Assembly (NCBI RefSeq): GCF_026571515.1
Contig: NW_026859993.1
Coordinates: forward strand, 62,001 to 126,000
From: Ruditapes philippinarum
Taxonomy: Eukaryota
DNA: 64,000 bases
Reading direction: 5' to 3'
Part shown: positions 27,101-62,412 of the stretch, piece by piece
How positions within the stretch are numbered: position 1 is the first letter of the stretch
How the letters are laid out: each line of letters begins with the position of its first letter
Notes under the pieces: model-generated
What the model saw: only the letters and a program-made list of their open reading frames with translations
The model's database searches: none
Told to the model about the DNA's origin: nothing
Translations under genes and position numbers: made by a program

Positions 27101-30100
27101 TAAACTAAACAAATATCCTCTATATCTATAGATGTCTATTATGCTAGAAAATTAGACTGAAATCACAATCAGTTATAGAGTTGAATCAGAAGGATACTAT
27201 CAATTGATTGATTGAAACAATCATTTATTATTTTTATGCAACATGTTCTTATCAACTTAAAAAAACAAACTCATTAACCATAGTTTTAATGTAAAAACAT
27301 CAAATATTCATATACATATGTACCATTCTCAAATTTTATATAGTTTATTAAAGTGCATTGACAAAAATGGACCCATTTGTGACATGATATTATCAATTAA
27401 ATACCAATTTTAGAGAATTTTTTGTTTCATCATATTATTAAAAATCTACTATAATTGATTGTCTTGTCAATGTAAATATGTAGCAAGGATTTATAAATTT
27501 TCGCCCACTTTTAATTCAACTCTACTTCTGTGGTAACTGGGGCATTATTTTTTCCTGAATTATGAATGTACTTGTATTGTATGTTCTTGTGTAAAGTTTG
27601 AAAATTTCTATGAAAGGCGGTAGTAATGGTCCATTTTTATGTGGAAAGGAGACAACATTTGAAGGTGGAATGAGGGAGCCATCTATAGCATGGTGGCCAT
27701 CACGGATAATACCTGGACAGGTAAACACTGTTTTATCTTTGTTTGTCTATATCATACATGTACAGTTTAGTTCACACTAAAGATTACACAAAATGCACTT
27801 GGTGTGCACTACATGTGCACTTCTAGTGTGCTTCAATATGCACCTCAAGACATGTGCACTTTGAAGTGCTCTTCTAGTGCACTAGACCATTTATCATTGT
27901 GCACTGGACAGTGTTTCAGTTAATTTGTATAGCAGTTACCTTTAATTTCAGCAAATATCTTTAGTTTATGACTTTCAAAAACTAGATTTTGCTCAGATTT
28001 TTACTTTAATGTCTGAATTCATAGCATCTTGTTTGAAAATAAATCAAATAGAATCCAAATTCTGTAATAAACTACATGTATGTGGAATGAGATATTTTCA
28101 TGACTTTGTAATTTGAAAATTGATGATAAAGTTTCAGTATATTTTATCATCTTTTGAACATAATGCACGATAGAAAATATTTACACAATGATTAGGCTAT
28201 CTACTGATGTACCTTTTTATTATTATGAGACTTAACAATAAATTAAAAGATAGGGAGGGGAGAACAACACATAAAAAAACCAGGTCGGTTTCTATATTTA
28301 CTTAAACTACCGGTTTCGGGTACTATATACCCTTCTTCAGGTTATCCTGAGACTTGGCCAATATGTTTCGTCACTGGCACATATAGTTTCAAAGTAAAGC
28401 AAACTTTAAGGCAAATCAACACTTTCAATTTCACATTATCATTTTTACAAATGTAAACAAGAAAGTGAAATATAACACCACACACCAAGAGCATCAGTGT
28501 GGTATTAAAGGTACTTTAGTTTATATACCAGTTTGCTTCATCAGGATACGACTGCTATCTTTTAATTTAAGGTTTCCAACCAGCTTGGATCTCTCATGGA
28601 TCTGTACTCTACCCTAGCTAGTCTGGCTGGCCAGGATATACCTACAGATAGAGTAGTGGATGGCCTTGACCTGACAAAAGTTCTGTTTGGAAATTATGAG
28701 ATTAAAAGGTAGGACTGGATATTTGTGAAAATTTTGTCCATCATTCATTGGCTATTCTAGCATATAAGACAGGATTATCTACTGTTTACACCGCTGCTCG
28801 AAAAACCTGTCTTACACCTACCATGTAAGACAAGTCATGCGTTTTGCAAATGATGTCATTCCCACGCACCTTTTATGAATGAGTTGCATTCTTAGGATGA
28901 TGTCAATGTGCCATTATGAATGAAGTTGTAAATTCATACGCTACTATTAGAAAAAAGTGCTGAATGAAAATATCAGTTTTGTAAATTCTATCTGTGATAT
29001 CATTAATTTGTAATATGCAAGAAAAGGAATCAAACACTGGCTGTCATCACAGACAGAATATCTAGCTCTCACATAACTGTTTAATGGAAACTGAGCAGAG
29101 CCTTGTTACCACCATAAACAGTTATTCTTGAGCTAGGTACTCAGGTCTATACCGGCAGATAGTGTAAGATTCTTACAATCTGAACACAGTTTATAAACGC
29201 TTAAACTGCTGGAAAATGAAATGACTAGCCTTTGTCACCAGTATAGACCCAGGCCAGCCAGCACATCTTTGCAGTGTGACTGGGCTCTGTATAGTTGGTA
29301 TCTCCAGCCATGCAGTCTGCTTGAGCTCTGTATAGTTGGTATCTCCAGCAGCAGTCTGCTTGAGCTCTGTATTAGTTGGTATCTCCAGCCATGCAGTCTG
29401 CTTGAGCTCTGTATAGTTGGTATCTCCAGCCATGCAGTCTGCTTGAGCTCTGTATAGTTGGTATCTCCAGCAGCAGTCTGACTGGGCTCTGTATAGTTGG
29501 TATCTCCAGCAGCAGTCTGCTTGAGCTCTGTATAGTTGGTATCTCCAGCCATGCAGTCTGCTTGAGCTCTGTATAGTTGGTATCTCCAGCCATGCAGTCT
29601 GCTTGAGCTCTGTATAGTTGGTATCTCCAGCAGCAGTCTGACTGGGCTCTGTATAGTTGGTATCTCCAGCAGCAGTCTGCTTGAGCTCTGTATAGTTGGT
29701 ATCTCCAGCCATGCAGTCTGACTGGGCTCTGTATAGTTGGTATCTCCAGCCATGCAGTCTGCTTGAGCTCTGTATAGTTGGTATCTCCAGCCATGCAGTC
29801 TGCTTGAGCTCTGTATAGTTGGTATCTCCAGCAGCAGTCTGACTGGGGCTCTGTATAGTTGGTATCTCCAGCAGCAGTCTGACTGGGCTCTGTATAGTTG
29901 GTATCTCCAGCAGCAGTCTGCTTGAGCTCTGTATAGTTGGTATCTCCAGCAGCAGTCTGCTTGAGCTCTGTATAGTTGGTATCTCCAGCCATGCAGTCTG
30001 CTTGAGCTCTGTATAGTTGGTATCTCCAGCAGCAGTCTGCTTGAGCTCTGTATAGTTTGGTATCCAGCCATGCAGTCTGCTTGAGCTCTGTATAGTTGGT

Positions 30101-40344: not shown

Positions 40345-43300
40345 ATTATGTTTATGGGGTCTTAGTAACGGATAAGTTACGTATTATGACGACATGGCTG
40401 GGGGAAAGCTGATGCCATTACTGGGAACGTACCTTTCAACTATTGCTCAAACTGTTGTCTGTTGTTCTATATGTTATATATGTTAAATTACAAATCTTAT
40501 GTCATGGTATTATCTCCAATAGACTCATTTACTACAGTAATATCTATAGTTCCGCCTTGACCAATTTGATATCTCCCATATTGTAAATTTCATTGTAAAG
40601 TATGAGTATAAAGAATGTGCAATGCATATTCAAATTATGTTATAACATGACCATAAATACAATGTGTGTGTGTGTGTAAGTAAAGTTTATTATTGTCAAA
40701 TGAATATATAAGTTGGTCTCACTTTGATAATTAAGTACATAGAGTTACGCTAGCAGTACTTGTTTTTGAAAAAATACTCCCACCTAAAAAACTTTTTATC
40801 TTTCATTTTGCAACAATAAATATATTTATACAGCAGTTCATTATGATTGGTTGTATTACTTGCCTGATTTTTAAATGCCCTTTATTTTTCTTCTATTCTC
40901 TGTCAACTGCTTTTGAATAGTTAAACTTTATTTGATGTTTTTCGTGTCAATTTTAAAACTATACTGAGGTCAAGGGCTAATTACGTTCAACTCCTGCAGT
41001 ATAAACGTTAACTACTTTCATTAAATTGGGTATATTAAGGTTGCTGTTTTGATTGTGATTTATCTTTGACCAATATCTTGTGGACAAAAATATCATTTGC
41101 TCATTTGGATTTTACGGAATTGTCATTTTTATTGTGTAAAATTACCCATAAATGAAAAGCAATTACACTTAAGCTGGGCCAATAATTGCACTAAAAATAT
41201 TGTTTAATGTAATTGCAATTGTATTTCTTGATCATCTTTACAAATTTATCGTTTTTATTACCGCAGATAATCTATGTATGCCTAAGAATTTAAATGTTAT
41301 GTCTACAGGGTTTTGGTCTGCTTTAACAGTTTTCCGTTATATGACTTTATTGTTTATTCTTTAAGATTTGTCTATTTGTTTCTGGTTTGACATTTCTTTA
41401 TGTTTTATAGCATAAAAAACCATCAGAAGCATTTATTTTTTGAGCACAGAGTAACTAAACGTTTTTAGTGTATTGGATTAGGATTTTTTGGTGGGTGGGG
41501 TGTTGGATGGCGGTGGATGGGGCCAAATGTACGATTATCAATTACCATATATTTTCTGAGAAAGAGAAAAATTTCACAATGTCTTTTTGAAAGATTCTGG
41601 TGTTTTATTATATAAATTTGCAGTAAATTGACTTTATACACCAGTCTTTCACCATTAAACACTTTGATATTTTGACAATATATAAGTCGTGTGAATCTCA
41701 TTGAAATGTAGGCTTATAGATATATATTTTCATATGTCAACGTTTATATATATATACACATGTATAAATATACATATAAACTGAGGGAAATACTGTTTAG
41801 TTTTGTAATAAATAAAACTTGAAACTTCATAAGTGCTTTATTGTTATTTTGTTTTCATCTATGTTTATGTATTTTTATTTTTAAGGCGCACACTTCATCA
41901 TAAAGTACCTGTCTAACTCGTTTGATTTGGAAGGGAGCACACCCTCCTATTAATCACTATCATCTATTATCTAATTGTCTAATTTATCTAATCTGATTTT
42001 AACCATCTGTACAATTTTTCCCTTTGCATGTTTTACTGTTATGAATTAGGTATAAAAATAATTGGCATATCCAAAAATGGTCAAAAGCAATATACCCTGG
42101 CTTGCCCAATATTTGTGTAAAATAATCATGATTGCATTGATACAATTTTTAATGCCCGACTTTAGACAGCTGTTAGTTAATTATCATTGAAGCTCCAGTA
42201 GCTTTAATGCCACGTTTGCTATTTACTTCAAAAGTTGACTAGGCATAATCATAGGCACTTGGTTTCGGGATAAAATAACCCTTTAAGAGGTTTGTAGAAC
42301 TCAAATATAATTGAATGTTCCATTTTTTTTAACGTAGATGTCTTTTCTAAAACCGTAATTTTTCCGATATTACTAAAAAAAAACAACTTTGTCTATGTCT
42401 GATTTAGAAAGGAAATCGACTGTTATCAATTTCACAATATCACTGTTATTCTTTCTTCCTCTGTATAAAAGAAACATATCTCTGTCACTTCTGCACATGG
42501 AACCTGCCATTGTACTATATGTCAGTAAAAGAAGTTGAAATATATCGCCTTATTACGATAAAGGTCTATTGCGAAGCATAATAGGTTGAGACATCAATGA
42601 TAATTGTTTTGTTAAAAGTAAATATACAATTAAGGATTTTTAATACCTAAATAATGAAAACGAATTGTACTAATACTATCCGTACTGAGGTGCAGTACCA
42701 TTTAGGTAAGGTATAATATAATTATAATATAAAGATAAACAGAACTTTCCTTAATTTTCTCTAAAAATACAAGCACATTCCATAAAAAGATTAACTCGGG
42801 TAAACATAACTGCGGGTGATTAACTTAATTCTGACCATTAAAATTATACACATTATATTTGAAGAAGTCCCAAACACCACCTTAAACCAAAACAAACAGT
42901 TTTGCGTTGACGAGGCGCATTTATTTGGTTAACGGGAACAATGTATGTAAATATACAATAGCTTTTACTTTTGTTTACCAAAATGCAAAGATAGTGTAAT
43001 ATATTAATACTAAATTCATTCATAATGATAATAAATTATCTTATCCGCTACTTATAATCTGGGACAGAAGCCAATCTTACAGTATAAACAATCTGGAAGT
43101 GAAACATTTCATTTACTTTTATAACTTAAAAACGGACTCTCCCATACTATTATTAGAAACTTCTGTTTATCAAAACATAATGCATGTATCCCTGACATTT
43201 CTTATTATTCCATCTAGTCAAAATCAAATTTATAAAAGTTCAGTAACGCTATCTATTGTTTTGGTTGGCTTTTGAATAGCATCAGTAATATAGTGTAATA

Positions 43301-44504
43301 ATTTATCAGATTAGTGGATACAATAAGAATCTCATCACAAAATGTTCGTTAACAAAAAAGCACAATGTCAATGTTTGTGGTTAAATATATTGATAGTCAA
43401 ATAAAAGGGTAGGGATCTTTCAATTATGATCGTAAAACGTTTATTGACATTACGAAACGCATCACATGATGAGATTAAATACGTGCGTTTTTTCTTCTTT
43501 TTTTTTGGCAAATCCTTCTTTAGAAATTAAAGTTATTAAAATGATACCTACGTCAAACATTAATCCGTTAGATATACTTGCTAATCCACACTCAAAATAA
43601 AAATCGTATGACAATGTAAGTCAATAGTGGAATGAACAGATTTGTAATGTGACAAAGTAGGGCGAATGAAATAAATTGAATGAATAAGTAAAATACATTA
43701 AGACAACCAGTTTACAACTTACAAGAGGATTTCTCGATTTCTTTTTCTTTCCCACTCTATATAATTCCTTGTGTCCATTATCTAACATTGTATTGTATAG
43801 GAAAGAAAGAAGAGTAAAAGATTGATAAACGTGTATGTAAAAATCATGTAGAATGATTCTTGTAATTAAACAGTACCAATCGTTGCGGTGTTCCGAATGA
43901 ATGCAAGCGTATAGAAAGCTATTTATATTTCCTCTATTCTTGGGGAAAATATTATTTTTTTTTTGTCCCAGCTCTTTTAAGAAATATTCAATGAAATTAG
44001 CAATCTAACGTTCATAATCGTTGCAATTGATCATGAAATCATTTGTACGGTCATACTGCTCTGGCATGTACAGACGTGTAAGTGCAGGAAATTAGTACTA
44101 GTTGACAGCCTGTCCGGAAATGATGCGATGGTTGAACTGCGCTCGGGTGAATTCAAATTCAAAGAGTCTTACTACCGTGATGGTAAAATGCCAACACCAT
44201 TAACAACAACGCGTTGCCATGCTTACGAGACAGCACATAATTTAAACACTTCCATCTATAATAACACATGTCCATGCTTACAAAAAATTAAATTTAAACA
44301 CTTTTAGTTAGATCATGAATATGTTAAAAATATCCGCTTGAGGAAGAATTTAAAAAAAAAAATATGTTTGAGATACAAATAAAATTTCTTTCTCGTTTAG
44401 CAAAAATGCTTGAGAACTGGACTTTACAGTTGTCTACACAGGCCTTTGCACAGATGTTCGGTTTTGTTGTTGTTGTTGTTTTTTCTTTTTCTTTTTTTCT
44501 TTAA

Positions 44505-45794
44505 TTACGACTTTGCAAGACCCACAAATATGATCACATTCAAAAGTGACATAAATATACTCGTAAAAAGGACAATCCAGTCAACCATATAGCTTATTTT
44601 CTTCCAAGTAATTAGATCGCCTTCGTCTTCTGACTTTTCCAGCTCGTGAATCGTTTCCTTTTCACTGTATCCAGATTTACTCTGCGGTCTAATTTGTTTA
44701 CTTTTCTCTGAACTGATCACAATAACTGGCTCCACCTCAACATTTCCGATTCGGCTTATTTTGCTTATTTTTCTTCGGGTACACGTAAAAAATCTGTACA
44801 TAGACTTGAGCCACGCAGGTACAATAAAGCTGTCGTCCCTACTATACAGGCGCATGTTAAGGATGGTGACACATACTATAAGTGCGCTTATAAACAAGTC
44901 TATAAATAACTTGTAAGATATAAGCGGTACTGGCTTCGAAGTTTGGGGCAACAAGTCATTGACAATGGTCATGTACACAGCAATAGCGAGCAGTGTTGTG
45001 ATACAGTATCCAATACGTTCTCCCGATTCTGGCACCAAGAGAAACACAAGAACATTTAACATGCTTAGAATTGATATTGGCATTATAATGTTTATCACAG
45101 CAAAAGTTGAGTCCCTTTTCAACTTTATAGTGAACGTTATTTCAGACTCATTTCCAGGCGCTACCGTCTTAACGTTAACTTTTGATCCAGTAACATCCCA
45201 TACAGAGTGAGGAGTATATACATCTAAAGAGACGTTGGGCATTCCAGCTAGAAGATTCACTTCATGGCTTTTGTAACCAAGGGAAGTAAAACTCGTGTCG
45301 CAACTCTGAGTGTCAAATGGAAATTTCCTAGCGTTAACACTACACGTGCTTTCAATGAGATCCGCTGGTATCCATTCCATTTGACCATATTGGTCAACAC
45401 GTATTCTGTCTGTTGATTTCCCTATAGTTGACCCTTTTGAAGAAGGACTGGATAACGTCATTTCCGGAACCCATACATCACCGAACGCCACTGTAAGCTG
45501 TTCGATGCCACCATTAACACTTGGGTCCCATTGTAATTTTTCATCTGTCCATACTAGTACCAACGCTGCGACAAAAGAAAACCTTTCATCAACTTCATCA
45601 AATTCTCTAATTGACTTAATTGACATGTATATGTTAACGTTTATTGCCGTGTTTTGGTTCGTTATCGGACGCACATTTTTGTTATAACCAGTGAATAATG
45701 ACGTATGCAGAGTCTCCATTTCCGTTATTGTAGCAGCGTTGATAAGAGCTATTACAAAATGTAATATTATCAAGAACAATAGTGTCCGGAACAT
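44505..45794 (-). CDS. Single-exon-CDS Cys-loop (nAChR-like, non-alpha) pentameric ligand-gated ion channel subunit, copy 1, 429 aa
   Basis: Signal peptide, YNKNVRP, WVPE, Cys-loop CSVNARKFPFDTQSC, M1-M3, M2 GERIGYCITTLLAIAV, M4 after WKKISYMVD. Confidence 0.95.
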   Translation of the reverse strand: MFRTLLFLIILHFVIALINAATITEMETLHTSLFTGYNKNVRPITNQNTAINVNIYMSIKSIREFDEVDERFSFVAALVLVWTDEKLQWDPSVNGGIEQLTVAFGDVWVPEMTLSSPSSKGSTIGKSTDRIRVDQYGQMEWIPADLIESTCSVNARKFPFDTQSCDTSFTSLGYKSHEVNLLAGMPNVSLDVYTPHSVWDVTGSKVNVKTVAPGNESEITFTIKLKRDSTFAVINIIMPISILSMLNVLVFLLVPESGERIGYCITTLLAIAVYMTIVNDLLPQTSKPVPLISYKLFIDLFISALIVCVTILNMRLYSRDDSFIVPAWLKSMYRFFTCTRRKISKISRIGNVEVEPVIVISSEKSKQIRPQSKSGYSEKETIHELEKSEDEGDLITWKKISYMVDWIVLFTSIFMSLLNVIIFVGLAKS

Positions 45795-48205
45795 AATAGT
45801 GTTTTCTTTGACCTCTATTTTTGCATATATTTAATTCAATAACTAATTTTAAGTTTTAATTTTATCAAGAAACTTTGTGTCCGAAACACAATATATTTCC
45901 CTTTGACCGTCTTTTTGTATCTTTTAAATTCAATAACTAATTTTATGTTTTAATTTCCACTGCCTTTTCAATAAAGAGCTTCGCCTAAACTGAAAAGATT
46001 ATATTAGATCTAGCATTAGTTAAATGGCTAACGGTCGTTTATCTCTGCTATGGTATTGTTTAGAGTTCATTCATCGTTTAATTCTTTGCGTGATTTAAAA
46101 ACGCAATTACTTGTTTCATTTTACTTGGTTAAGGTTCAAACAAGGCTTAAATAATATTTTTGATTTAAATCAAAAGATTTTACTGATCTTTAGCCGCTTA
46201 AAATGTTTAGAAGATTACAAAAGCAGTTGCAAAATCATAATAAAGGAATAAAATATTTCTGATAAGCAATGAAAATATGAGTATATCACAGATTAATTGA
46301 AAGCATTATAACAAATTATTATGCTAGGCATTTTAGCCAAAAGTTAGACCTATCCAAAACAAATACCTCCAGAAAAGATATTTGCATATTTGCTATCTAC
46401 TACATATATGTTGCTACCGAACAAAAGTCCTAAAACAATCGAAGAATAAAGTGTTAAAATGCCATGCACCGATTTCATATGATTTTTTATTTAGGAAAAT
46501 TATATGAAAATAAAAACAAGTAATATTTATTTATTATTTAGATATAATTCTGCTCTATATAATCGATAAATGTTTGTCAACGTGTGGTCTTTATTTTAAG
46601 GTGAAGCTTGATGACATAAATGAATATCAATATTTGTCTACACAATATCTTCTTCTCAGCCTTTTCCGTCAAACTTTGGATGATGAATTATAGTTGATGT
46701 GTACGGATTGTTTTGTTTTGTTGTTGTTTTTTTAATTTTCAGCAACATAGGTTGCCCATTTATTTCCCCCGTAATTGGTGCAGTGGGGTCGGAGAGCCAT
46801 CCCCTACTGTACCTTACATTAATATTTCATAGGCTTAGAAATATATTTTCATATTTCAACCTTTTTATATATACACGTATATTTTTACATATAAACTGAG
46901 GGAAATACTGTTTAGTTTTGTAATAAATAAAACTTGAAACTTCATTAGTGTTCAACAGTTGATTTTTTCATATATGCTTATGTATTTTCATTTTTAAGGC
47001 ACACACTTCATCATAAAGTAGATTTCTAAATCTTTGGATTAGAAAGGGAGCACACCTTCTTGTCAATCACTGTCGTCCATTATACAATTAGATTTTAAAT
47101 GTCTGTACAATTTTTTCCCTTGGCGTCTTTTACTGTAATGAATGAGGTATAAAAATAATAAGCATATCCAAAAATGGAAAAAAGGTCAAAACAAACAAAA
47201 GCTTGTCCATTTTGCATAAAATAATCATAATTGCATTAATACAATTTTTTCTGCCCGACTTTAGAAAGTCGTTAGTTAATTACCATTGAAGCTCCAGTCC
47301 CTTTAATGACACCTTTGCTATTAACTTGAAAAAAATGACTGGGCTAAATCATGATTTTAAAACAATAACACTATAATCTCTGCATGCTATTAAGGAGAAA
47401 ACATCAGCTCCTCTCATAGAACATGAATACACCTAGGCAATACACCTACGTTATAAGGCAATGTTCGTTCGCAAGAAATAACAAACTTTGTCTATTTGGA
47501 TGATTTAGAAAGGAAATCGACTGTTATCAACTTCAAAATATCACTGTTATTCTTTCTTCCTCTGTATAAAAGAAACATATATCTGTGTCACTTCTGCCGT
47601 AAATGTAGCACATTGTACTATGTCAGTAAAAGAAGTTGAAATATATCGCCTTATTACGATAGAGGTCTATTGCGAAGCATAATAGTTTGAGACATCAATG
47701 ATAATTGTTATGTTAAAACTTAAAAGTAAAAAATAATTAATGGGTTTTAATACATAAATAATGAAAACGAATTGTACTAAAACTGTCCATACTGAAGTGC
47801 AGTACCATTTATGTAAGGTATAATATAATTACATGTATGCTATAAAAGTTAAACAGAACTTTCCTTAGATTAGTTCTAAAAATACAAGCACAGTCACTAA
47901 AAAGATTAACGCGGGTTAACATAACTGCGAGTTATTAACTAAATTCTGACGATTAAACTTAATACACATTATATTTTAAGAAGTCCCAAACACCACCTTA
48001 ATTCAAAACCATTACAAACAGTTTTGCGTTGACGAGGCGCATTTATTTGGTTGATGGGAACAGTGTATGCAATAATACAATAGCTTTTACTTTTGTTTAC
48101 CAAAATGCATTGATAGTGTAATAAAATAATACTGAATTCATTCATAATGATTATAAATTATGTTTTCCGCTACTTATAATCTGGGACAAGCCAATCTTAC
48201 AGTAT

Positions 48206-49364
48206 TGTGGTGCCCAGACCACTGCTTTATGTTTCCAGGACAGTCTGCAGCCCCACATAAAACTCAGGGTTCGTTTTACACGGCCCAAGTACAAATTATA
48301 AAGATGACACAAAAGACATTTTGTAACTTAAAACTCTTTTAATTAAAATATAATAAAGATCTATTTATTTAAATATACATTAAGTCATGGATGCCTAAAT
48401 CTATAATTATTATAAATAAAGCTGACCAGATTCAGTAAACAAGTACCAAGTTTGGTACGACATAATCGATGAGATACCAGATCTGATAGTAACCAGATTG
48501 GGTACTATACCAGATTGGGTATTATACCAGATTTGGTATGAATAATGAACAAAATATGGAACAACAGTTCTCTACACTGGCAATGTAAATTATAACTGTT
48601 TAACAATAACAACAATTGAAATTCACCTGTATCATATCCGTTTCTGGTCACATACTCGTCTACAATTGTCAACTCAAACGAAGAGTAGGCCTACTTATCT
48701 GCTAATATTTTTTGATGCGTTTATTTAAGGTCGCCGCCGGAAAGCCCATATGGGCGACCGTACACTCAAGTCGGGTCATCCTAGAGCGACCCGCCGAGAT
48801 TTTTCGTCGATTTTTACCAGCTTTATTGGTGGAGGAAGACACCAGGTGCCCCTCCGTCATTATTTCAGGCACGAGCGGGCACCTGGGTAGAACCACCGAC
48901 CTTCCGTAAGCCAGCTGGATGGCTTCCTCACATGAAAGATTTCGACCCGAGTGAGGATCGAACCTACAGTGGTGAGGGACCTGTGATCTCAAGTCAACGA
49001 CTTTAACCACTCGGCCACGGAGGCCCCAAACTCTGCTTATATGAGATGACAGCGCAGTATTTATAGTACCCTGTGACGTCATCACATTAATATTCAAAAT
49101 GGCCGACCAGTGGCAAATTCAGAAATGTGACCAAATATTAAGCAAGATTACATGAAAAAAAATGTATGTCAGCATTTATGAATGGATAATAAACATTTAT
49201 ATATACAAATGGCATCTGAAAATCATAATAATATAAGATAAAAGCAGTTACATAGATAGAAATCATCAAAACAATGCGATGGTTCGTACTCAGAAATATT
49301 CGTACCCAAAGTCGGAAAATGAATAAATGTTAAAGAACATTGATCATATAGCCTGAGCATCACA
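48206..49364. mobile_element. 1159-bp TG...CA insertion with 4-bp TSD (solo LTR or Ginger-like element)
   Basis: Absent from the paralogous site at about 43080 (cttacaGTATaaacaatc); GTAT at 48202-48205 and 49365-49368; terminal inverted repeat tgtggtgcccagac / tgtgatgctcaggc (11/14). Confidence 0.85.
48709..49027 (-). mobile_element. tRNA-derived SINE with V-domain-like core inside the TG..CA element
   Basis: Head GGGGCCTCCGTGGCCGAGTGG (A box), GGTTCGATCC (B box), core GAGGAAGCCATCCAGCTGGCTTACGGAAGGTCGGTGGTTCTACCCAGGTGCCC, AATAAA and A-run tail. Confidence 0.85.
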
Positions 49365-50776
49365 GTATAACCAATCTGGAAGTGAAACATTTCATTTACT
49401 TTTATAACTGTAAAACGGACTCTCCCATACTATTATTAGAAACTTCTGTTTATCAAAACATAATGCATGTATCCCTGACATTTCTTATTATTCCATCTAG
49501 TCAAAATCAAATTTATAAAAGTTCAGTAACGCTATCTATTGTTTTGGTTGGCTTTTGAATAGCATCAGTAATATAGTGTATTAATTTATCAGATTAGTGG
49601 AAACAATAAGAATCTCATCACAACATATTTGTTTACAAAAGAGCATATGTCCATGTTTGTGGTTAAATATATTGATAGTCAAATAAAAGGTTAGAGTAGG
49701 TATGTATCAATTATGATCGTTTATTGACATTACGACACGCATCACATGATGAGATTAAATACGTGCGTAATCTTTTTCACAAATCCTTTTTAAGAAATTA
49801 TAGTTATAAAATGATACCTACGTCAGACATTAATCCGTTAGAAAAACTTGCTAATCCACACTGAAAATAAAAAATCTTATTACAATGTAAGTCAATAGTG
49901 GAATGAACAGATTTTTAATGTGACAAAGTAGGGCGAATGAAATAAATTGAATGAATAAGTAAACACATTAAGACAACCAAATAACAACTTACAGGAGGTT
50001 CTCACGATTCCTTTTCATTTCCCACTTTATATGATTTATAACCATTCAGACTTGTGTCCATTATTTAACATGTCATTGTATAGGAAAAGAAGAAAAAAAA
50101 ACAACGTATTGTAAAAGATTGATGAATGTGTATGTAAAAGAGCATGTAGAATGATAGTTCTTTAAAATTCTTGTTATAAAACAGTACTAATCGTTTCGGT
50201 GTTCCGAATGAATGTAAGCGTATATAGGAAGCTTCATACTTTTCCTCTATTCTTGGGGAAAATATTATTTTTTGTCCCAGCTCTTTTAAGAAATATTCAA
50301 TGAAATTGGCAACCTAACGTTCAAAATTGTGCTATCTTTTCTACAGTCATACTACTCTGGCATGTACAGACGTATACAAGTGCAGGAAATTAGTACTACT
50401 TGACAGCCTGTTCAGAAACGATGCGATGGTTGAATTGCGCTCAGGTGAATTCAAATTCAAAGAGTCTTACTACCGTGATGGTAAACTGCCAACACCACCA
50501 ATTACAACGCATTCCCATGCTTACAAAACAGCACATAATTTTAACACTTCCATCTATAATAACACATTTACATGCTTACAAATTGAAACACTTCTAGTTA
50601 GATTATGAATATGTCAAAATTATCCGCTTGAGGAAGGATAAAAAAAATATTGTTGAGATACAAATAAAATTCCTTTCTCGTTTAGCAAACATGCTTGAGA
50701 ACTGCAATTTACAGTTAGTTATATACACATGCCTTTGCAAAGATGTTTGTTTTTTGTCTTTTTTATTTTTCTTTAA

Positions 50777-52081
50777 TTATGATTTTGCAAGACCCACAAA
50801 TATGATTACATTCAAAAGTGACATAAATATACTCGTAAATAGGACAATCCAGTCAACCATATAGCTTATTTTCTTCCAAGTAATTAGATTGCCTTCGCCT
50901 TCTGACTTTTCCAGCTCGTGAATCTTTTCCTTTTCACTGTATCCAGATTTACTGTCCGGTATAATTTGTTTACTGTTCTTTGAACTGATCACAATTACAG
51001 GCTCCACCTCACCATTTCCAATTCGGCTAATTTTGCTTCGGGTACAGGTTAAAAATCTGTACACAGACTTGAGCCACGCAGGTACAATATAGCTGTCGTC
51101 CCTACTATACAGACGCATGTTAAGGATGGTGACACATACTATAAGTGCGCTTATAAACAAGTCTATAAATAACTTGTAAGTTATAAGCGGTACTGGCTTC
51201 GAAGTTTGGGGCAACAAGTCATTGACAATGGTCATGTATACAGCAATAGCGAGCAGTGTTGTGATACAGTATCCAATGCGTTCCCCCGATTCTGGCACCA
51301 AGAGAAACACAAGAACATTTAACATGCTTAGAATTGATATTGGCATTATAATGTTTATCACAGCAAAAGTTGAGTCCCTTTTCAACTTTATAGTGAACGT
51401 TATTTCAGACTCATTTCCAGTCGCTACCGTAATAACGTTAACTTTTGATCCAGTAACATCCCATAAAGTGTGAGGAGCATATGCATCAAAAGAGATGTCG
51501 GGCATTCCAGCTAGAAGATTCACTTCATGGCTTTTGTAACCAAGGGAAGTAAAACTCGTGTCGCAACTCTGAGTGTCAAACGGAAATTTCTTAGCGTTAA
51601 CACTACACGTGCTTTCAATGAGACCCGCTGGTATCCATTCCATTTGACCAAATTGGTCAACACGTATTCTGTCAGTTGATTTCCCTATAGTTGACCCTTT
51701 TGAAGAAGGACTGGATAACGTCATTTCCGGAACCCATACATCGCCGAACGAAACTGTAAGCTGTTCGATGCCACCATTAACACTTGGGTCCCATTGTAAC
51801 TTTTCGTCTGTCCATACTAGTAACAACGCTGCGACAAAAGAAAACCTTTCATCAACTTCATCAAATTCTCTAATTGACTTAATTGTCATATATATATTAA
51901 CGTTTATTGCTGAGTTTTGGTTCGTTATTGGACGCACATTTTTGTTATAACCAGTAAATAATGACGTATGCAGAGTCTCCATTTCCGTTATTGTAGCAGC
52001 GTTGATTAGTGCTATTACAAAATGTAATATTATCAAGAAACATAGTGTCCGGAACACAACAGTGTTTCCTTTGACCGCCAT
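50777..52081 (-). CDS. nAChR-like Cys-loop subunit, copy 2, 434 aa (ATG at 52081, MAVKGN...)
   Basis: Intact ORF, near-identical to copy 1; the ORF-track start at 52102 is a TTG, the first ATG is at 52081. Confidence 0.93.
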   Translation of the reverse strand: MAVKGNTVVFRTLCFLIILHFVIALINAATITEMETLHTSLFTGYNKNVRPITNQNSAINVNIYMTIKSIREFDEVDERFSFVAALLLVWTDEKLQWDPSVNGGIEQLTVSFGDVWVPEMTLSSPSSKGSTIGKSTDRIRVDQFGQMEWIPAGLIESTCSVNAKKFPFDTQSCDTSFTSLGYKSHEVNLLAGMPDISFDAYAPHTLWDVTGSKVNVITVATGNESEITFTIKLKRDSTFAVINIIMPISILSMLNVLVFLLVPESGERIGYCITTLLAIAVYMTIVNDLLPQTSKPVPLITYKLFIDLFISALIVCVTILNMRLYSRDDSYIVPAWLKSVYRFLTCTRSKISRIGNGEVEPVIVISSKNSKQIIPDSKSGYSEKEKIHELEKSEGEGNLITWKKISYMVDWIVLFTSIFMSLLNVIIFVGLAKS

Positions 52082-53479
52082 TTTTGTATCTTTATAATTC
52101 AATAACTAATTTTAAGTTTTAGTTTTATCAAGAAACTTGTGTCCGAAACACAATATATTTCCCTTTGACCGTCTTTTTGTATCTTTTTAATTTAATTTAA
52201 TAACTAATTTCAAGTTTTAATTTTATCAAGAAATTTTGTGTCCGAAACACAATAATTTCCCTTTGGCCGTCTTTTTGTATCTTTTAAATTCATTAAATTA
52301 AAACTAATTTTTAGTTTTAATTTCCACCGCCTTTTCATTAAAGAGCTTCGCCTAAACTGAAAAGATTATATTAGATCTAGCATTAGTTAAATAGCTAACG
52401 GTCGTTTATCTCTGCTATGGTATTCTTCTTCATTCATGGATTAATTCTTTGCGTGATTGAAAGAACACAATTACTTGTTTTATTTTACATGGTTCAGGTT
52501 CAAACAAGACTTTAATAATATTTTTGATTTAAATCGAAATATTTTACTGATCTTTAGCCGTTTAAAATGTTTAGAAGATTACAAAAGCAGTTGCATAATC
52601 ATAATTAAGGAATCAAAAATATTTCTGATAAGCAATGGAAATATGAATATATCACATATTAATTGAAAGTATTATAACATATTATTTTGCTAGGCATTTT
52701 AGCCAAAAGTTAGACCTTAACAAAACAAATACCTTTAGAATAGATATTTGCACATTTGCTATAGATCTACTGTTCATATGTGTTGCTACAGAACAAAAGT
52801 CATAAAAACAATCGAAGAATAAAGTGCTTAAATGCCATGCACCGATTTAATATGATTTTTCATTTAGAAAAATTCTATAAAAAATAAAAACAAGTAATAT
52901 TTATTTATTATTTAGATATAATTCTGCTCTATTTAACCGATAAATGTTTGTCAACGTGTGGTCTTTATTTCCAGCCTAATCTTTAATGTGACGCTTGATG
53001 ACATAAATGAATATCGATATTTCTCTACAGTGTAAAATGTACACAATCTCTTCTTCTCGGCCTTTTCCGTCAAACTTTTGATGATGAATTATAGTTGTTG
53101 TGTACGGATTGTTTGTTTTTTTGTTATTGTTGTTTTTAATTTTCAGCAATATAGGTTGCCCATTTATTTCCCCCGTTATTGGTTCTTTATTCATGAAAGC
53201 CAAACTTGAAGGAATGTGGATATTGAATGATTTCTTAGGCACGTGTAAAATTCACCTTCTTTATTGATAAGGTCCCCAAAAATATTACTCCCCTAGATAC
53301 CCATCTGTAGAAACAAACACTAGATCCCGCTACTTTAATGCCGGTGTTGTACGTGCCATAATTGACAAGAATTAACTTCTACATTTGAAGAAATTAAATA
53401 AAAACTGTAAAGCACATATTTCCAAAAAGGATTAAAATCTTGATGTAATTGTATTCTTGTATAATCTGTACCATACTTA

Positions 53480-54290
53480 TATATATTATTTAAAACAGGG
53501 CATGAACTTTTAACACAATGTAAAAAAATACAATTAAATGTCAACAATCTTCTTAGCTATGTTGCTTTTCAACTACATGTATACATAAAACACTTTAGGT
53601 TAAGCATCTTAAGCCCTCCAAACTTGTTTTCTTGAGATATAATATTTCTTTTTACCTTATCTCTTGAATCACTCCATAGAAAATTGAAAAAACATTTGCT
53701 GGATAATATTTATTTTTGCTAGTGCTGGATTAGGAATACTCAAATTTAAATGATTTTATTTTGAAAAAGCAAGGGTTTTCATAACCACCAATTTGCCAAG
53801 TGGCGTTAATACTCTTTTTGACCAGCAATCAATCAACAAATCAGCAAACAAATGTTTACATAAAATTTTAAAGTTTACATTGTGTTTTAATGATTCTGAA
53901 GTGCCATTTAGGAATAAACTAGTATTATAGGCATATTATGAGAGTTGATACCCTAAGCTATTAACACTAATTCCTTTTATATTATGATTACCTATTAACA
54001 ATATTGAAAGGATTTCTGCGCAAAGAATGATGAAAAGGTAGGTAGACAGAGCATCACCTTGACGGCAGCCTCTTTATCGCAAGAAACAGTATGACATGGT
54101 ACCATTAACAATAAAACCATTCTCCTTCTTGTATCCATTTAGCTCTTGATCTGATAAATACACCATACATTTTCTTCTTCCGTAAGTCTAAAATTTCCTC
54201 TCTTTTTTTGTTTTCTAAAAGTTCATAATTAGTGTTCGGCTGGGATTCAATACCCTTTATTTCTTTTAAAAGTTTATCTTCATTATTGAT
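53480..54290 (-). mobile_element. Decayed L1/Tx1-like LINE fragments
   Basis: RSRAKWIQEGE, GCRQGDALSTYLF. Confidence 0.7.
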
Positions 54291-56565
54291 TTTGTGTACG
54301 GATTGTTGTCGTATGTAATGCAACATAAATTGTAATTGTGCAATGTGCGTAAAAGCTGAGGCAAACAACCAAATGATTTTTATTTATTTAGCCAAATACC
54401 ATTTAAAATCATTTTGACTTGCTGTATAATTTACATAAAAAAACTGAATTTAAGATCAATTTTCATTGGTCATTTAAAAAAACAAACTGAAATATGGGAA
54501 TCTTATTGGACAATCTGTAGTTCTAAAATAATATGTACAGGATAGATTTATTTTAACTTTCAACTTTTTTACAGTGTTGGTGCAACGCTGTACCCACGGA
54601 TTAACTGGGAAAAAGCACCAAAATATTCACAATTCCGGAGTAAGACTATTGTACTCAGCTTGACACACTGCGAGTTTGCAGTTACATCGAGGTCCTAAGC
54701 AAAAAAAAGTAACACATCAATGTAAGGTATAATTTGTTATTTATTCCTATCATAAAGCCTTTTTTGACATGATGATCGCAATTGATTGAGACACATCACA
54801 TGATTAAGGTATGACCATCCTAATGTTCATTACATGTATAAGAACTGAAAAAGCTTAAAGGACACCTACATGCAAAATTTAACAAACTTTGTCTTGCGGT
54901 TATGGCCATTTTCTGATCTTAAGCTTAGATGTTCGAAGGGCCCTTTTTTCAAAAATATCAATATCATCCTTATGGAAAAAAATCCCAATAAGTATTCTTA
55001 AGAATTAACAACAACAACAAAATGATAACAATCAGCATCCACAAACGCATAATTATTGTTTCTTCTCAACATCTATGAAATATGTATAAAATATTTCCTA
55101 CCACACCCATTTTTAACACGTTTTTGACAATTTTCCTACTTAGCCTAATTAAGAAAGTCCCTAAATACCAACATGAGGGTTTGTTTACAAAGTTTCCTTA
55201 CTTTTCTCAAATTTGTATTGCTAATATTAAATACTTTTACCGTGTAGTTCTTATATCATACATGTACTTTGAAAATATCAGATTAATTTGTTATCATATT
55301 TAGCATTATTTAGCCTAAATTTATTATGAAATTAAAATTGAACAATTGTTTCTTTCCAAAAGGGCTATGTTAGATAGATAAATAATGTTAAAGGGAAAAA
55401 AGAAAGAAGAAAAAGTTCACTCTTCTTGGTTTTGTCCCACGGCCCCAAGTTTCAATGCAGCTAAAGTAGTTTCGCCTATTTAAATGGGTAATGCATAAAG
55501 ATGGTCATTTTCACTAATCCTTCTTTAGAAATGATAATTATAAAATGATACCTACGTCAAACATTAATCCGTTAGAAAAACTTATCAACGCTCTAAAAGT
55601 AAAAATCAAATACAATCATTGTGAAAAGGTAGAGGGAATGAAATTATTTGAATAAATAATTTAAAAACATTTAGAGATTTAGATACAATTGCAACTTACA
55701 GGGGGTTCTTTCACTTTCTTTTCCTTTCACAATTTCAATAACGCTTTTTACTAGTGTCAATTGTTATACATGTCATAGAATAGGAAAAGAAAAAAAATGC
55801 TTTGCTGAAGAAATAAAGTAATGATCTGAACACGATTTTTAAAATCACAGACCTGACATATTTCACAATTACGCACTGTCACTGCCATGCACTTACCAGT
55901 GGTAAGGAAACAAACAACTGTGTGGAAAGTATTTTTACTCGCCTTGTATTAATATATTTAAAAGCAAGCTAACGTTTGTATCAACAGATTTTTGATCCAT
56001 GCTTACTAGATAGCACATCATTTAATCACTGACAGAATATCCGTTTAAGGAAGAATTAAGGAAAACGAAATTCATATCTCTTTTATCTAACATGCTAAAA
56101 TTACTTTTACAGCTAAATAACACAGGCCCTTGCAGATATGCTAATGCATTGTTTTCTTTGCTTTAAAGATCCTGTAAACACATTTATTTATGGTTTTATA
56201 TAAAATATGATGCTCAAATTAAGATTTATCAATATTGTAAGTTAAAAAAACAACATTATTTATAAAACTATTACCGAATTTACTATTTCATGTAAATAAA
56301 GGATATAGGTAATTAGAAATTTGTTTTCTATAAATTCGAAGTCTAATTTTCCAATAGCAAATGAATGCATATAATTTTTAATTGATTCAAAATATGTGAA
56401 AATATTTGCTGTACAAATTTAAAAAATTTAAAAAAACCCCCTTTTTTTAATTATCTTTCGATTGGCTTAAACCTTTGTATTAGCATGATTAATTATACAT
56501 ATATAAAATTTCACACAAGTGTGGGATACCAACAACAATCTTTCAAAAACATACAGGATTTTTAA

Positions 56566-57878
56566 TTACGACGTTGCCATTCCCAAACAATTGATCACAC
56601 TCAAGAAAGTGACATAAATATACTTGTGCAAAGGCAAATCCAGTTCAACCATATTAGGCTTTAATTTTTTTTTTTCTTCCCCAAGTAAATTTTAGATTGC
56701 CCTTCATCCTCTGACTTTTCCGGACTCCGTGCATATTTTCCTTTTTCAGGTGTATCCCAGATTCATTTTTTCCAGTTATTTCCTTACTTTTTTTGTTTGA
56801 ATTGGGTCTGAATTACTGGCTCAATTTCACCGTTTTCGACTCGTTGATTTTTTGCGGCAGATACAGGTTAAAACTCGATACACAGCCTTGAGCCACGCAG
56901 GGACAAGATAACTGTTGTCCCTGCTATACAAACGCATGTTAAGGATGGTGACAAAATACTATCAGTGCGCTTATAAACAAGTCTATCATTAACTTGTAAG
57001 ATATAAGCGGTACTGGCTTCGAAGTTTGGGGCAACAAGTCATTGACAATGGTCATGTACACAGCAATAGCGAGAAGTGTTGTGATACAGTATCCAATGCG
57101 TTCTCCCGATTCTGGCACGAGAAGAAACACGAGAACATTTAACATGCTCAGAATTAATATTGGCATTATAATGTTTATCACAGCAAAGGTTGCATCTCTT
57201 TTCAAATTTATAGTGAACGTTATTTCAGATTCATTACCAGATGGTAATAGCATCGCGTTAACTTTTGATCCGGTGACAGCCCATAAGGTGTGAGGAGTAT
57301 AAACATCAAAAAAGACGTACGGCGATTCAGATTGAAAGATTCACTTCATGGCTCTTGTAACCTAAGGAAGTAAAACTGGTTTCGCAACTCTGAGTGTCGA
57401 ACGGAAAGTTTTTAGCGTTAACACTACACGTGCTTTCAATGAGACCCCCAGGCATCCATTCCATTTGACCAAATTGATCACCGCGAATTATGTCAGATGA
57501 TTTTCCTAATGTTGATCCTTTTGAAGAAGGACTCGACAATGTCAGTTCAGGAACCCATACATCATTGAACGACACTGTAATCTGTTCGATGCCACCATTG
57601 ACACTTGGGTCCCATTGTAACTTTTCATCTGTCCATGAAAGTACCATCGCTGCGACAAAGGAAAACTTTTCATTCACTTCATCAAAATCCCTAATTGACT
57701 TAACTGACATGTCAATTTTAACTTCAATTGCCGTGTTTTGGTTCGTTATTGGTCGCACATTTTTGTTATAACCAGTGAATAATGACGTATGTAGAGTTTC
57801 CATTTCCGTAATTGTTGCAGCGTTGATTAGTACTATTACAAAATGTAATATTATCAAAAAATTTAGTGTCCGGAACAT
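56566..57878 (-). pseudogene. nAChR-like Cys-loop subunit, copy 3, frameshifted (pseudogene or assembly error)
   Basis: ORFs 57327-57878 (ECD) and 56939-57253 (M1-M3) are collinear with copy 1; frameshifts near 57325 and 56953 and many homopolymer indels in 56570-56850. Confidence 0.8.
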
Positions 57879-58861
57879 AATAGTGTTTCCTTTGACCGCA
57901 ATTTTTTATTAAACTTTTTTATTATTATTCAAGAACTTAAAAAAAATATAATCTAATTTCAACTTTTAATTTGTGCTGATTTTCATCTAAGAGCTCCGCC
58001 GTGACAGAAATGATTGACGTAGTATAATTTTCATGGCTAATGGTCATTTATTTGAATAACGGTATAGTTGAGAGTTCAAATAGGTTTAATTAAAGAGACG
58101 CAATTACCCGTTTATTTTAATAGATTCCCCGGGTTTTAAAAAGATCAGGGTTTAAATAAAGGGTTTTAAAAAAAAAATTTTTGATTTTAATCGAAAAATT
58201 TTATTTATTTTAGCAGCTTTTTTAAAAATGAGTCCATTTTTCATAAAAGGGAAACAATTTTTTTTATAGGCCAAAAAAAAAATTTATTAATCAAACGGGT
58301 AAGAATTTTAAAAAACCAGGGGATTTTTTCTGAATTTAAACCTTTTATAGTCAAACATCAATAAAGTTTCCAAAAAAGGGAAAACAAAAAATTCTTACTT
58401 TTAAAAGATGAATTTTTGTCAAAGGGATCTTATTTTCAGTTTTATTCGGGAAATCTTTTAATTTTTTCCCTTTCAAAAAAACATTTTGGCCCAAATACGA
58501 TTGTATCGTAGAAAAGGGGAAACAATTTGCAAAAGAATTTTCATTTTTTGTTTTATTTATAAAATATACAATTTGCATTTTTTTCCCCCCTTTCCTTTGA
58601 ATATCGGATAATGACCTCGGACACCAATCTTTCCGGCAAACTTCGCATTATGAAGGATTGTCGATGTGAAAAAAACTAACATGATTTGTTTTTGTGTTAT
58701 TTGCGGATAAAATGTAGAAAATAACCAGATGTGTTTTTATTTAGTTTTCTTACAATGATATGGAATATAAAATCAGGGGTATTTATATCTGCAATAAAAT
58801 GCATAGCTGTCATGGCTCGTTGGCGCGGTTTGGAACTGTTATTTTAAAGTGTAAAAAATAT

Positions 58862-59231
58862 ATAAATACTATCAGTGCTCTTATAAACAAAAAACTGGAA
58901 ACAACGTGATCCCTCGGAAGCATTAGTCAAAACAAAAATTACATGGAAAATGCAGACTCGGTTTGATTGAGTCTTTACTTGGGGATAATGAATAGGTGCA
59001 ACAATGAATAAGTGAATAAGTTTATCATTAACTTGTAAGACATAAGCGGTACTGGGCAACAATTCATTGACAATAGTTATGTACAAGGCAATGGCAAGAA
59101 GCGTTATGATCCAAAACCCAATACGTTCTCCAAATTCTAGTACCAGAAGGGACACATGAACATTTCACATAATGACATTACAATATCACATCACAAATTG
59201 CATGCCTTTTCAACTTTATTGTGAACGTTAT
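58862..59231 (-). pseudogene. Decayed M1-M3 fragment of the same receptor family (copy 4)
   Basis: LEFGERIGFWIITLLAIALYITIVNELLP; an M3 piece at 58862-58890 is separated from the rest by about 125 bp of unrelated sequence; no ECD found. Confidence 0.75.
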
Positions 59232-61117
59232 GTTACAGGAACTTAAATCGCTATAGATCAGATAAATAAAATCCTGAAACAGTATGTTGACTTGTATTTA
59301 ATTATTTTTCCCTTAAATATTCTACCACTTGCCCCTCACCGCTGTAGGCTCGAATCCCGATGCAAGTTTGTCGGTAATTTTAGTTAATCGTTTATTAAAT
59401 ATATGTGGTCAGGAACGAGAAAAATATCACATGAAAAAATAAAACTTGAGGAAACAAGTTTGCTTCTTTGAAAAGAATAATGCGAGAGGTCTTTTTTGCT
59501 GCCGTAGCAGATTTGTTTAATTTGAAAATATTTGGGGATGAATGGTTATAAATTACAATTATTTAGCAAAATAGAATTTATTATATATATTTATTATAGT
59601 ATCATACTAAAAGTTTGTTTTACACTTCATTTTTTTAAAAATGTTTTGAATGATTATATGCGGAAGAAATGCGGAATAAACAGTATATAAAGCTGCATGC
59701 CTCCAACCACATTATTTGAGCAAAATCTTGAGTAAATTTTGTGCCAATTGCGCCAAAAAATTTCCGTTGCGTTATTTAGTAATACCGATTCAAAGGAGCA
59801 TCACTATTTTGGTTCACGGTTCACTCGGTCATATAATAGTGCATGGTGATATTGTACCTGTAATGTTCACTGTTACTATTCATCGGAACATGAAATAGTA
59901 AAACGCTTTTCAGAAAACAATATGGTAATCGATTTATACAATATAAAAGATTAAAACGGAATTAAACATCCACGAAACGTAAATGATATTTTCCGATTTT
60001 TCTATGTACCGATTCGTTCATTTCGATGTTAATCTTTCGTTTAAGTTAAGTCGCAATTTGAAACGGAACATGCGCGAATCAATTTTTGTAGACTGCTCCT
60101 AATGATTTTACGCTTTAAATGAGATTCGTTCACTACAAAATACTGTGGAGAGGTCTGATGACCTCTCCAATTTTTGAATATCGATATTTGTCTATTGTAA
60201 TATTATGCAACAAAGGGCAACTAAGGTTGTATTTATACAATTTGCGCTTTCTAGAAAATAACCAGATGGTTTTTTCTTTATAACGATATCGGATATAAAA
60301 TGAGAGATATCTATGTCTTCGATAAAATGTGTCTTTACCATCAAAAATGGTGCTTAATGATAATAAAACAAGTGTAGAACACATTCAAATGTTTCTTTTG
60401 TTAAAAAAACATCACTGTAGATCTTGTAAGAGGACTTCTGCTAGAGTTTATACATTTGTATATGTGGTTATTCGCAATGTGGTTGACATGCTAAAGATGA
60501 AACCGTAGATAACTGCATTCTGGGTGTCACATTGTCAACTTTTGCCGTTTAATGCATTTCTTAAGGGATTCCGTTTCCTCTTTTTATAGCCAGGCTAGAA
60601 CGCATAGCTGGAAGCATGAATTTGAAATAAAAAAAGACTGAATGAGCCATCAAGAATTCCACATCTAATTGATTGAAAAAAGGCATTGCTACAAAAAGAA
60701 TGAACTGTACTTAACTACTTAAAAGAATATGACAACCATGAACATGTACAAATTATTATTTGCTTTACTATTCGATTTAAACGAAAAAATTGCCCGAATC
60801 TTTCTGCGATTGAAAATGTTTTCATATACATCGATACTGTTGAAATCTGTCCAATGCCCTCGGTAACCGAAGCTATTTACCTTATGTCAGAATCAGTTTG
60901 TTCCGACGATGCTGGCCGAAGGACTAGAATAAGAAAAAATCGCTTAATAATTTGATAATCACAAGCTCTCTGTAAAATATTCATCAACGTGAATTTGCTA
61001 ATGTATATTTCATCACAATACCCGCTGTGCAACATAATATTAGCACGTTGCTAAGTATGCTGCGATATTTGGTAAAACTTTAAAACTTAAGGATGATCGT
61101 AAAAGATCTGTTTACAT

Positions 61118-62412
61118 CTACGAGGTTGTCATTCCAATAAATATGATCATATTGATCACTGAGAAAAGCAAACAAGTGAAAAGAGCAATCCAGTCGATCA
61201 TATAACTTATTCTTTTCCATGTTATATGACCATCTTCCTTCTCTGAATTTTCAAGGTCGTTGGAACTTTTATTTCCTTTATGTTTAGATTGATTTTCCTG
61301 CATTGCACTTCTTTCATTTAAATTGTTTTCACTTTCTGCTTTGATTCCCGCGGTGTCGTCTGGATAAATTTTTCTGCCGGTACAAAATAAAAATCTGTAT
61401 ACGACTTTTAGCAGTTTTGGTACACTATTGTTATCGTCTTTACTATATAGTCGCATGTTAACGATGGTAACAAAAACTATCAGCGCGCTTGTGAGCAAAT
61501 CAATCATCAACTTGTAGGAAATAAGCGGTACTGGCTGTGAAGTTTGGGGCAGTGAAGTCATTGACAATGGTCATGTAGACAGCAATTGCGAGAAGTGTCG
61601 TAATGCAGTACCCTATACGTTCGCCCGATTTTGGCTTCAAAATAAATACAAGAACATTTAATTAGCTAAGTACAGATATGGGCATTAAAATGTTTATCAC
61701 AGCAAAAGTTGCATCCCTTTTCAACTATATAGTGAACGTTATTTCAACCTCATGATCAGATCCTAAAAGCGTCGTTTTTACTGCTGATCCAGTGACATCC
61801 CATAATGCATGAGGAGAATATACAATGTATTGAACTCCAGCTACAAGATTCACTTCATTGCTCTTGTACCCTAGGGACATAAATTTGATATCGCAACTCT
61901 GAGTATCAAAGGGAAATTTATTAGCGTTAACGTTGCACGTGCTTTCAATGAGCCCCGCTGGCATCCACTCAGTTTCACCCCAATCATTAACACGGATTCT
62001 GTCTGAAGATTTACCTATTGTTGTTCCTTTTGAAGAAGGACTTGACAAAGTCAGTTCTGGTACCCATACGTCATCGTAAGATACTGTTATTTGCTCGATT
62101 CCACCATTTAGCTTTTTGTCCCAACGTAACTTTTCATCCATCCAGTGAAGTTGCAAGGCTGCAACAAAAGCAAATTTTTCATCCACTTCGTCGAATTCTT
62201 TTATTGACTTTATAAACATAAATACTTTTACGTCAATGGTCAAGCTTTGATCCGTTATTGGACGCACATTTTTGTTATAGCCAGTGAATAACGACATATG
62301 AAGATTCTCCATTTCCGTGATATTAGCTGCGTTTATAAGCGATAATAACAAAATATAATACTTTCAAGTATCTGAAGGCTTGGAAAACACCAGTATATCC
62401 TTCAAAAGCCAT
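61118..62412 (-). pseudogene. nAChR-like Cys-loop subunit, copy 5, more divergent, disrupted
   Basis: ATG 62412 (MAFEGYT.., matches MAVKGNT), +1 shift near 62345, TAG for AAG at 61725-61727, TAA in M1 near 61662, +1 shift near 61552; Cys-loop CNVNANKFPFDTQSC; intact M3-M4 ORF 61118-61567. Confidence 0.8.

Follow-up and report, generated by a model that had tools for sequence, protein, structure and literature searches.

A cluster of genes resembling those for nicotinic acetylcholine receptors (nAChRs) in the Manila clam, Ruditapes philippinarum, raises the question of what such a receptor may detect once its acetylcholine (ACh) site has been lost. The cluster lies in a window of 64 kb, which is the whole stretch of DNA analysed here and to which all positions refer (G000:C8480:62001-126000, in an assembly of 1.41 Gb and 15,874 contigs). 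It includes two intact genes, C1 and C2, and three that have decayed, C3 to C5. In our judgement, held with moderate confidence, C1 and C2 encode orphan, non-cholinergic subunits of ligand-gated cation channels, belonging to a birth-and-death array of single-exon genes derived from nAChRs. The original prediction, made from the letters of the DNA alone, had gone further in proposing that the array serves the sensing of environmental chemicals or surface cues.

The product of C1 has the complete architecture of a Cys-loop receptor subunit: a signal peptide, a ligand-binding domain, the Cys-loop itself (C151-C165), four transmembrane segments (M1-M4) and a short intracellular loop. Pfam assigned PF02931 (Neur_chan_LBD, 5e-42) and PF02932 (Neur_chan_memb, 1e-15). 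An AlphaFold2 model, made with 99 homologues (predicted local distance difference test score, pLDDT, 87.9), predicts the full fold of a pentameric ligand-gated ion channel, in which M1-M4 are helical, loop C is a short hairpin and the intracellular loop, of approximately 60 to 75 residues, is disordered. The top structural match is the alpha7 nAChR (Z 31), while the top sequence matches, among the best 60 of 349 in the PDB, are human alpha6, alpha3 and alpha7 and Torpedo/muscle beta (E 1e-45 to 1e-42). A Foldseek search of the model against the PDB was non-discriminating, canonical nAChRs occupying all top ranks, and a search of the ESM Atlas returned only generic molluscan Neur_chan clusters.

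The Cys-loop and pore have been kept, as had been predicted. The former is C151-x13-C165 with FPFD inside it; in the latter, M2 carries the motif ESGER with Glu259 at -1', Leu269 at 9' and Asp280 at 20', and there is no Pro-Ala insertion. Two Neur_chan domains, a Cys-loop and an M2 of cation type are together the signature of the cationic (nAChR/5-HT3) branch, to which C1 would belong, and the M2 sequence predicts a channel selective for cations.

What C1 lacks is the site at which ACh is bound. HMMER alignments to human alpha6 and Torpedo beta place Ala77 at the Trp of loop D, Ser115 at the Tyr of loop A and Leu172 at the Trp of loop B; in loop C, Tyr188 has become Thr210, Tyr195 has become Glu216 and the vicinal Cys pair (CC) has become Val-Ala, with no CC pair anywhere along the loop. 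Every replacement called earlier by eye (Y93 to S, W149 to L, W55 to A, no CC, no Y188, Y195 to E) was matched in these alignments, and the motifs quoted in support (WVPEMTLS, FTSLGY, AALVLVW and VKTVAPGNESEITF) are all present in the C1 translation. Both marks of an ACh-binding subunit of alpha type, the vicinal CC of loop C and the aromatic box of five residues, are therefore missing. Since C1 and C2 have other residues in place of the cation-pi Trp of loop B, the rest of the aromatic box (four positions) and the disulfide of loop C, canonical ACh binding should be impossible in both, and neither product is expected to be gated by ACh. With every canonical ACh-contacting aromatic residue gone, the earlier proposal of a non-cholinergic receptor is a fair one.

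Comparison with other clams indicates how long this state has persisted. In a maximum-likelihood tree, the six intact genes of the contig form a clade found only in Ruditapes (support 99), the product of lineage-specific duplication, which is sister to two Mercenaria proteins. Outward from these come another Ruditapes locus, then Mactra and then Dreissena. The sub-family that also lacks the loop B Trp (26 rows, support 96) takes in Ruditapes, Mercenaria, Mactra and Dreissena. Mercenaria and Mactra share the pattern of replacement (Ala/Ser/Leu...Glu), and Dreissena does so in part (Ala or Gly, Ser or Thr, Leu or Met). As the pattern is conserved across clam families, the non-cholinergic state of the clade appears to be old and maintained. 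No prior description of this conservation of the replacement residues in venerids, Mactra and, partly, Dreissena was found in the literature.

The array is under purifying selection overall. Pairwise ratios of nonsynonymous to synonymous change (dN/dS) among its intact members are 0.19 to 0.35 over the whole protein and 0.07 to 0.25 in M1-M3, at dS up to approximately 1; for C1 and C2 the values are 0.34 and 0.07, respectively. Constraint is uneven along the ectodomain, as dN/dS calculated segment by segment reaches 0.92 in loop F (residues 181-200) and 0.83 in loop C (201-220), against 0.04 to 0.13 in loops A, B and D, 0.41 in the segment with loop E and 0.04 to 0.24 in most of the ectodomain. 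In three independent pairs, residues 181-220 have 46 nonsynonymous and seven synonymous differences, whereas the counts elsewhere in the ectodomain are 86 and 78 (Fisher p = 4e-6). Between C1 and C2 alone, the same residues show nine nonsynonymous differences and no synonymous one.

C1 is transcribed in some runs. Contigs of run X1, a run whose type is guessed as RNA, cover 44001-45867 at a word depth of 20 to 150 and fall to 0 at 46001-46400, and this coverage looks like that of a single-exon transcript. There are no splice joints within C1 in the run data. Among raw RNA runs, C1 reaches a depth of approximately 1 in X21 and is not covered in X23.

Taken together with the pattern of selection, these features suggest how the proteins might work. 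The products of C1 and C2 would form pentameric, cation-selective channels, either homomeric or mixed with sister paralogues. They would read a non-cholinergic ligand at the classical interface between subunits, probably at the old site, where loops F and C, which would close the pocket between subunits, change fast from one paralogue to the next. Several points weigh against this interpretation. Channel function cannot be assumed for the clade because Alpo4, a related lophotrochozoan orphan, gave no currents despite exhaustive screening (PMC10338036). Loss of these genes is evidently tolerated, since three of the five copies in the window are dead. Expression of C1 is low or absent in two of four runs, and X1, from which the support comes, is itself a run guessed to be RNA. 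The rapid evolution of loops C and F could equally reflect relaxed constraint at a site no longer in use or diversification of ligands, and dN/dS in these loops stays below 1.

The genes themselves are disposed as follows. A tblastn search of the window with the C1 product (429 amino acids) revealed five homologous segments, all on the (-) strand between 44505 and approximately 62390 (Table 1), and no C1 homologue in positions 1-44000. The original prediction of five uninterrupted paralogues on one strand was thus right as to number and strand, but only C1 and C2 are intact; C3, C4 and C5 are pseudogenes. Its description of the genes as intronless, tandemly arrayed and derived from nAChRs holds: the coding regions of C1 and C2 have no introns, each open reading frame (ORF) spanning the whole protein, and the array continues past the window on the same contig (C8480) and strand. 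At least 11 copies are found on the contig, of which five are inside the window; beyond it are four further intact genes and several broken copies. The window may accordingly be viewed as the start of a tandem array shaped by birth and death. Neighbouring members are already annotated, as proteins of the same 314,427-bp contig are named by NCBI 'acetylcholine receptor subunit beta-like' and 'acr-3-like'.

Table 1. Position and state of the receptor genes in the window and of the units in which they were duplicated.
Feature	Position	Strand	State or content	Basis
C1	44505..45794	(-)	intact single-exon gene; 429-aa (amino acid) Cys-loop cation-channel subunit (predicted)	ORF, Pfam, AlphaFold2 model
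C1 transcribed span	44001..45870	(-)	coding sequence (CDS) + ~75 nt 5' untranslated region (UTR) + at least 500 nt 3' UTR	run X1 contigs
C1 duplicated unit	43079..46779	(-)	3' UTR + CDS + ~1 kb upstream	blastn self-comparison
C2	50777..52081	(-)	intact single-exon paralogue; 434 aa from own ATG	
C2 duplicated unit	49362..53183	(-)		blastn self-comparison
C3	~56561..57878	(-)	pseudogene; full length, 11 indels vs C1, most frame-breaking	
C4	58850..59237	(-)	relic; M1-M3 only (C1 residues 217-337), ~46% identity, frame change	
C5	61118..~62389	(-)	pseudogene; no start codon, two +1 frameshifts, two in-frame stops	

C1 and C2 are close copies, with proteins 92% identical and units that are 95% identical at the nucleotide level inside the CDS and 87 to 89% outside it (blastn self-comparison). 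C2 is counted from its own ATG because the position of the C1 start codon reads GTG in C2. The lesions of C3 relative to C1 include +1 at codon 183, +1 at codon 308 and -8 at codon 345. In C5 the frameshifts are at codons 14 and 281 and the stops at codons equivalent to 224 and 245 of C1; stops are also flagged at G000:C8480:123551-124348. The possibility that the damage to C3 and C5 reflects errors of assembly was considered and ruled out, since the lesions are too numerous and too varied (8- and 13-nt indels, stops of substitution type, a lost start) to be assembly slips.

Downstream of C1, positions 41709-43085 are a 79 to 87% identical copy of 46830-48205, the segment upstream of C1, with no receptor gene attached; this is probably the remnant of another array unit whose gene has been deleted. 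Between C1 and C2, 48708-49027 is an interspersed repeat of approximately 320 bp, with at least 4660 first-look copies in the genome at 97 to 98% identity. It is very abundant in all four runs examined (depth up to approximately 450 in raw RNA reads), which points to a young, abundant and transcribed element resembling a short interspersed element (SINE). The repeat has no tRNA or Rfam match, and scans for both over 40-64 kb and 48-49.6 kb gave none. Further from the array, a 41-bp minisatellite at 29270-32376 (approximately 77 copies, 92% match) has a GC content of approximately 50% against a background of 32% and is open in several frames, giving spurious ORFs of up to 1051 amino acids. An ORF of 160 amino acids at 10387-10869 (-) resembles, by eye, a fragment of reverse transcriptase from a non-LTR (long terminal repeat) retrotransposon, and 17492-17631 consists of 140 N, either masked or a gap in the assembly.

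Absence of the ACh site had been presented as a mark of this array, and this claim did not survive comparison with the rest of the genome. Ruditapes has at least 727 first-look PF02931 candidates; of the 150 scored, which sit in many tandem clusters, nearly all have the whole ligand-binding domain in one open frame. When 66 sequences in a single open frame, each of at least 370 amino acids, were sampled, none had the vicinal Cys pair and none kept all five aromatic residues, while 26 kept none of the five; the pore motif GE[RK] was kept in 63. The pair was also missing from all 120 relatives checked among the matches listed, every named one of which is a bivalve protein. The same loss was reported for oysters in 2019 (PMC6896357). 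Loss of the site is the ordinary condition in this bivalve gene expansion, which has already been published.

Elsewhere in the genome, canonical alpha-type sequences (GSWTYD, Y-x-CC) occur as separate exons of intron-containing genes (L080-L083), and other genes therefore supply cholinergic receptors. Three of these loci (L080, L082 and L083; G000:C5389, C12391 and C7674) combine alpha-type exons (GSWTxD, Y-x-CC) with an M2 that begins PPESPAK or PPESPTK, which we take to be the Pro-Ala type of motif known from anion-selective molluscan nAChRs of Lymnaea. The M2 of L081 has the cationic form SGEK. Several receptor loci are near-identical and lie on different contigs (L009/L010, L023/L026/L028 and L013/L015); they are probably uncollapsed haplotigs, because of which genome-wide receptor counts would be inflated.

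This setting bears on the other ways in which the array could be read. One is that its members are peripheral chemosensory channels resembling the chemotactile receptors (CRs) of cephalopods by convergence, and that, placed in the siphon, mantle edge, foot or palps, they respond to chemicals from the environment or to surface cues. The gross traits agree with those of CRs, the genes being intronless, tandem and derived from nAChRs, with ACh residues lost and a cation pore kept; the loops that close the pocket, C and F, change faster in amino acid sequence, a pattern described for CR pockets too (PMC11526382); chemoreceptor families typically evolve by birth and death, as the array does; and for divergent molluscan clades the hypothesis has been put forward in a 2026 preprint (PMC13174522). 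However, the CR-like traits do not discriminate, because every single-exon bivalve paralogue sampled has them, and the sequence of C1 shows no particular leaning towards CRT1 or CRB1. At the core of the pocket, residues have been conserved across clam families instead of diversifying, and with Ser, Ala, Thr, Glu and Leu in place the pocket would lack the exceptional hydrophobicity known from CRs. C1 is all but missing from two RNA runs. In published bivalve data, expanded nAChRs are linked mostly to the gill, to early development and to stress and immune responses, and not to a sensory organ. A role in chemosensation is speculation that nothing obtained here supports, and we consider it unlikely. 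In the clade of venerids, mactrids and dreissenids, all five aromatic-box residues were replaced before the lineages split. A broader version, more doubtful still, is that this clade comprises bivalve ionotropic receptors for non-cholinergic, possibly environmental, ligands, which would be a second, independent conversion of nicotinic receptors to chemoreceptors alongside that of cephalopod CRs.

Some nAChR subunits serve in assembly without contributing a site, as vertebrate beta1, alpha5 and beta3 act as accessory subunits. The clam proteins might similarly bind no ligand and co-assemble with ligand-binding paralogues or a canonical alpha, tuning trafficking, conductance or desensitisation. 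Loss of key residues on the principal and complementary faces alike would be consistent with this, as would the muscle beta subunits among the top PDB sequence matches, the strong conservation of M1-M3 and the Cys-loop while loops C and F drift, and the 'beta-like' label given by NCBI to neighbouring copies. But because no full site was found in the 66 paralogues sampled, a few exon-split canonical alphas would be needed as partners for hundreds of genes, and conserved Ala, Ser, Leu and Glu across clam families would be unexpected on a functionless face, making an accessory role rather improbable. It is far less probable that the genes are functionless duplicates, derived from retrocopies and heading to decay, whose transcription is incidental. 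Three of the five copies in the window are pseudogenes, more broken copies lie along the contig, and in oysters the nAChRs with few introns are more often silent or weakly expressed (PMC6896357). Nevertheless, C1, C2 and four more members keep full frames at the dN/dS and dS values given above, orthologous clades have been retained in Mercenaria, Mactra and Dreissena, and C1 is transcribed, so that decay is already unlikely for C1 and C2. An orphan, non-cholinergic channel subunit is thus the reading that we prefer for both.

The array is one more annotated venerid example of a phenomenon published in 2019. If members of the bivalve expansion were indeed chemoreceptors, they would be a second case of neurotransmitter receptors recruited for environmental sensing and a candidate ionotropic chemosensory family for bivalves, whose repertoire of sensory receptors is poorly known. 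C1 and C2 form a compact test set for deorphanisation, convenient because both are recent and intact, and their differences are concentrated in loops C and F. No deorphanised bivalve nAChR-like channel was found in a search of the literature.

The nearest known system is the bivalve expansion itself. Bivalves have 99 to 217 nAChR genes each, mostly intronless and in tandem, which arose by retroposition and tandem duplication (Jiao et al. 2019, BMC Genomics, PMC6896357). In C. gigas the principal ACh-binding site is fully conserved in only 13 of 132 nAChRs; the authors proposed diverse ligands, and expression was gill-biased, developmental, stress-responsive and infection-responsive (PMC6896357). 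In the 2024 genome paper on R. philippinarum, Neur_chan_LBD / neuronal acetylcholine receptor likewise appears as one of the families that have expanded in Ruditapes and Mercenaria (PMC11592408). The clam array is of the same kind: single-exon, tandem on one strand, lineage-specific and with pseudogenised members, most lacking the principal ACh residues and having a pore of cation type. The clade to which it belongs has lost all five aromatic-box positions, including the loop B Trp.

Cephalopod CRs (van Giesen 2020, Allard 2023 and Kang 2023, as summarised in PMC11526382 and PMC13174522) share with the array descent from nAChRs, lack of introns, clustering, absence of ACh-binding residues, a cation-type pore and fast change around the pocket. 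The CR pocket is strongly hydrophobic, whereas the clam replacements are small, polar or acidic residues. In alignments based on structure, C1 is 21% identical to octopus CRT1 (Z 23.5), 25% to squid CRB1 (Z 24.1), 26% to human alpha7 (Z 31) and 22 to 25% to muscle and alpha4beta2 subunits, and no CR chain is among the best 60 of its 349 PDB sequence matches. The named close homologues of the array, among the matches listed, are all from bivalves, while the CR clade is predominantly cephalopod (PMC13174522). Indirectly, these comparisons argue against a place for C1 inside the CR clade. Any functional likeness would be convergent; the original prediction had allowed for an origin independent of cephalopod CRs, and this, should the resemblance be meaningful, agrees with a Ruditapes-specific clade in a bivalve-only family and with a C1 that is no closer to CRT1 or CRB1 than to human alpha7. 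The 2026 MolluscaGenes preprint describes divergent molluscan clades with substituted binding residues and a 'CR-like' clade in which bivalves are represented, expressly suggests that shifts to new ligands may have occurred independently and urges functional tests (PMC13174522).

Alpo4, an orphan of the annelid Alvinella pompejana (PDB 8bx5), does not respond to ACh or serotonin (PMC10338036). It has in common with the clam proteins that it is an nAChR-like orphan of a lophotrochozoan, that its family is expanded and that its loop C lacks a vicinal disulfide (C1 against the Alpo4 structure, Z 26.2, 21% identity). It differs in keeping the aromatic cage (F103, W159, Y199, Y205 and W65), of which the clam proteins keep nothing. 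Canonical nAChRs (human alpha7, alpha6 and alpha3, and muscle/Torpedo beta) share with C1 the Cys-loop, Glu at -1', Leu at 9' and the topology, with structural Z of 30 to 31. In contrast to them, C1 has its ACh contacts replaced on both faces, a short loop C with no disulfide, a short intracellular loop and no introns.

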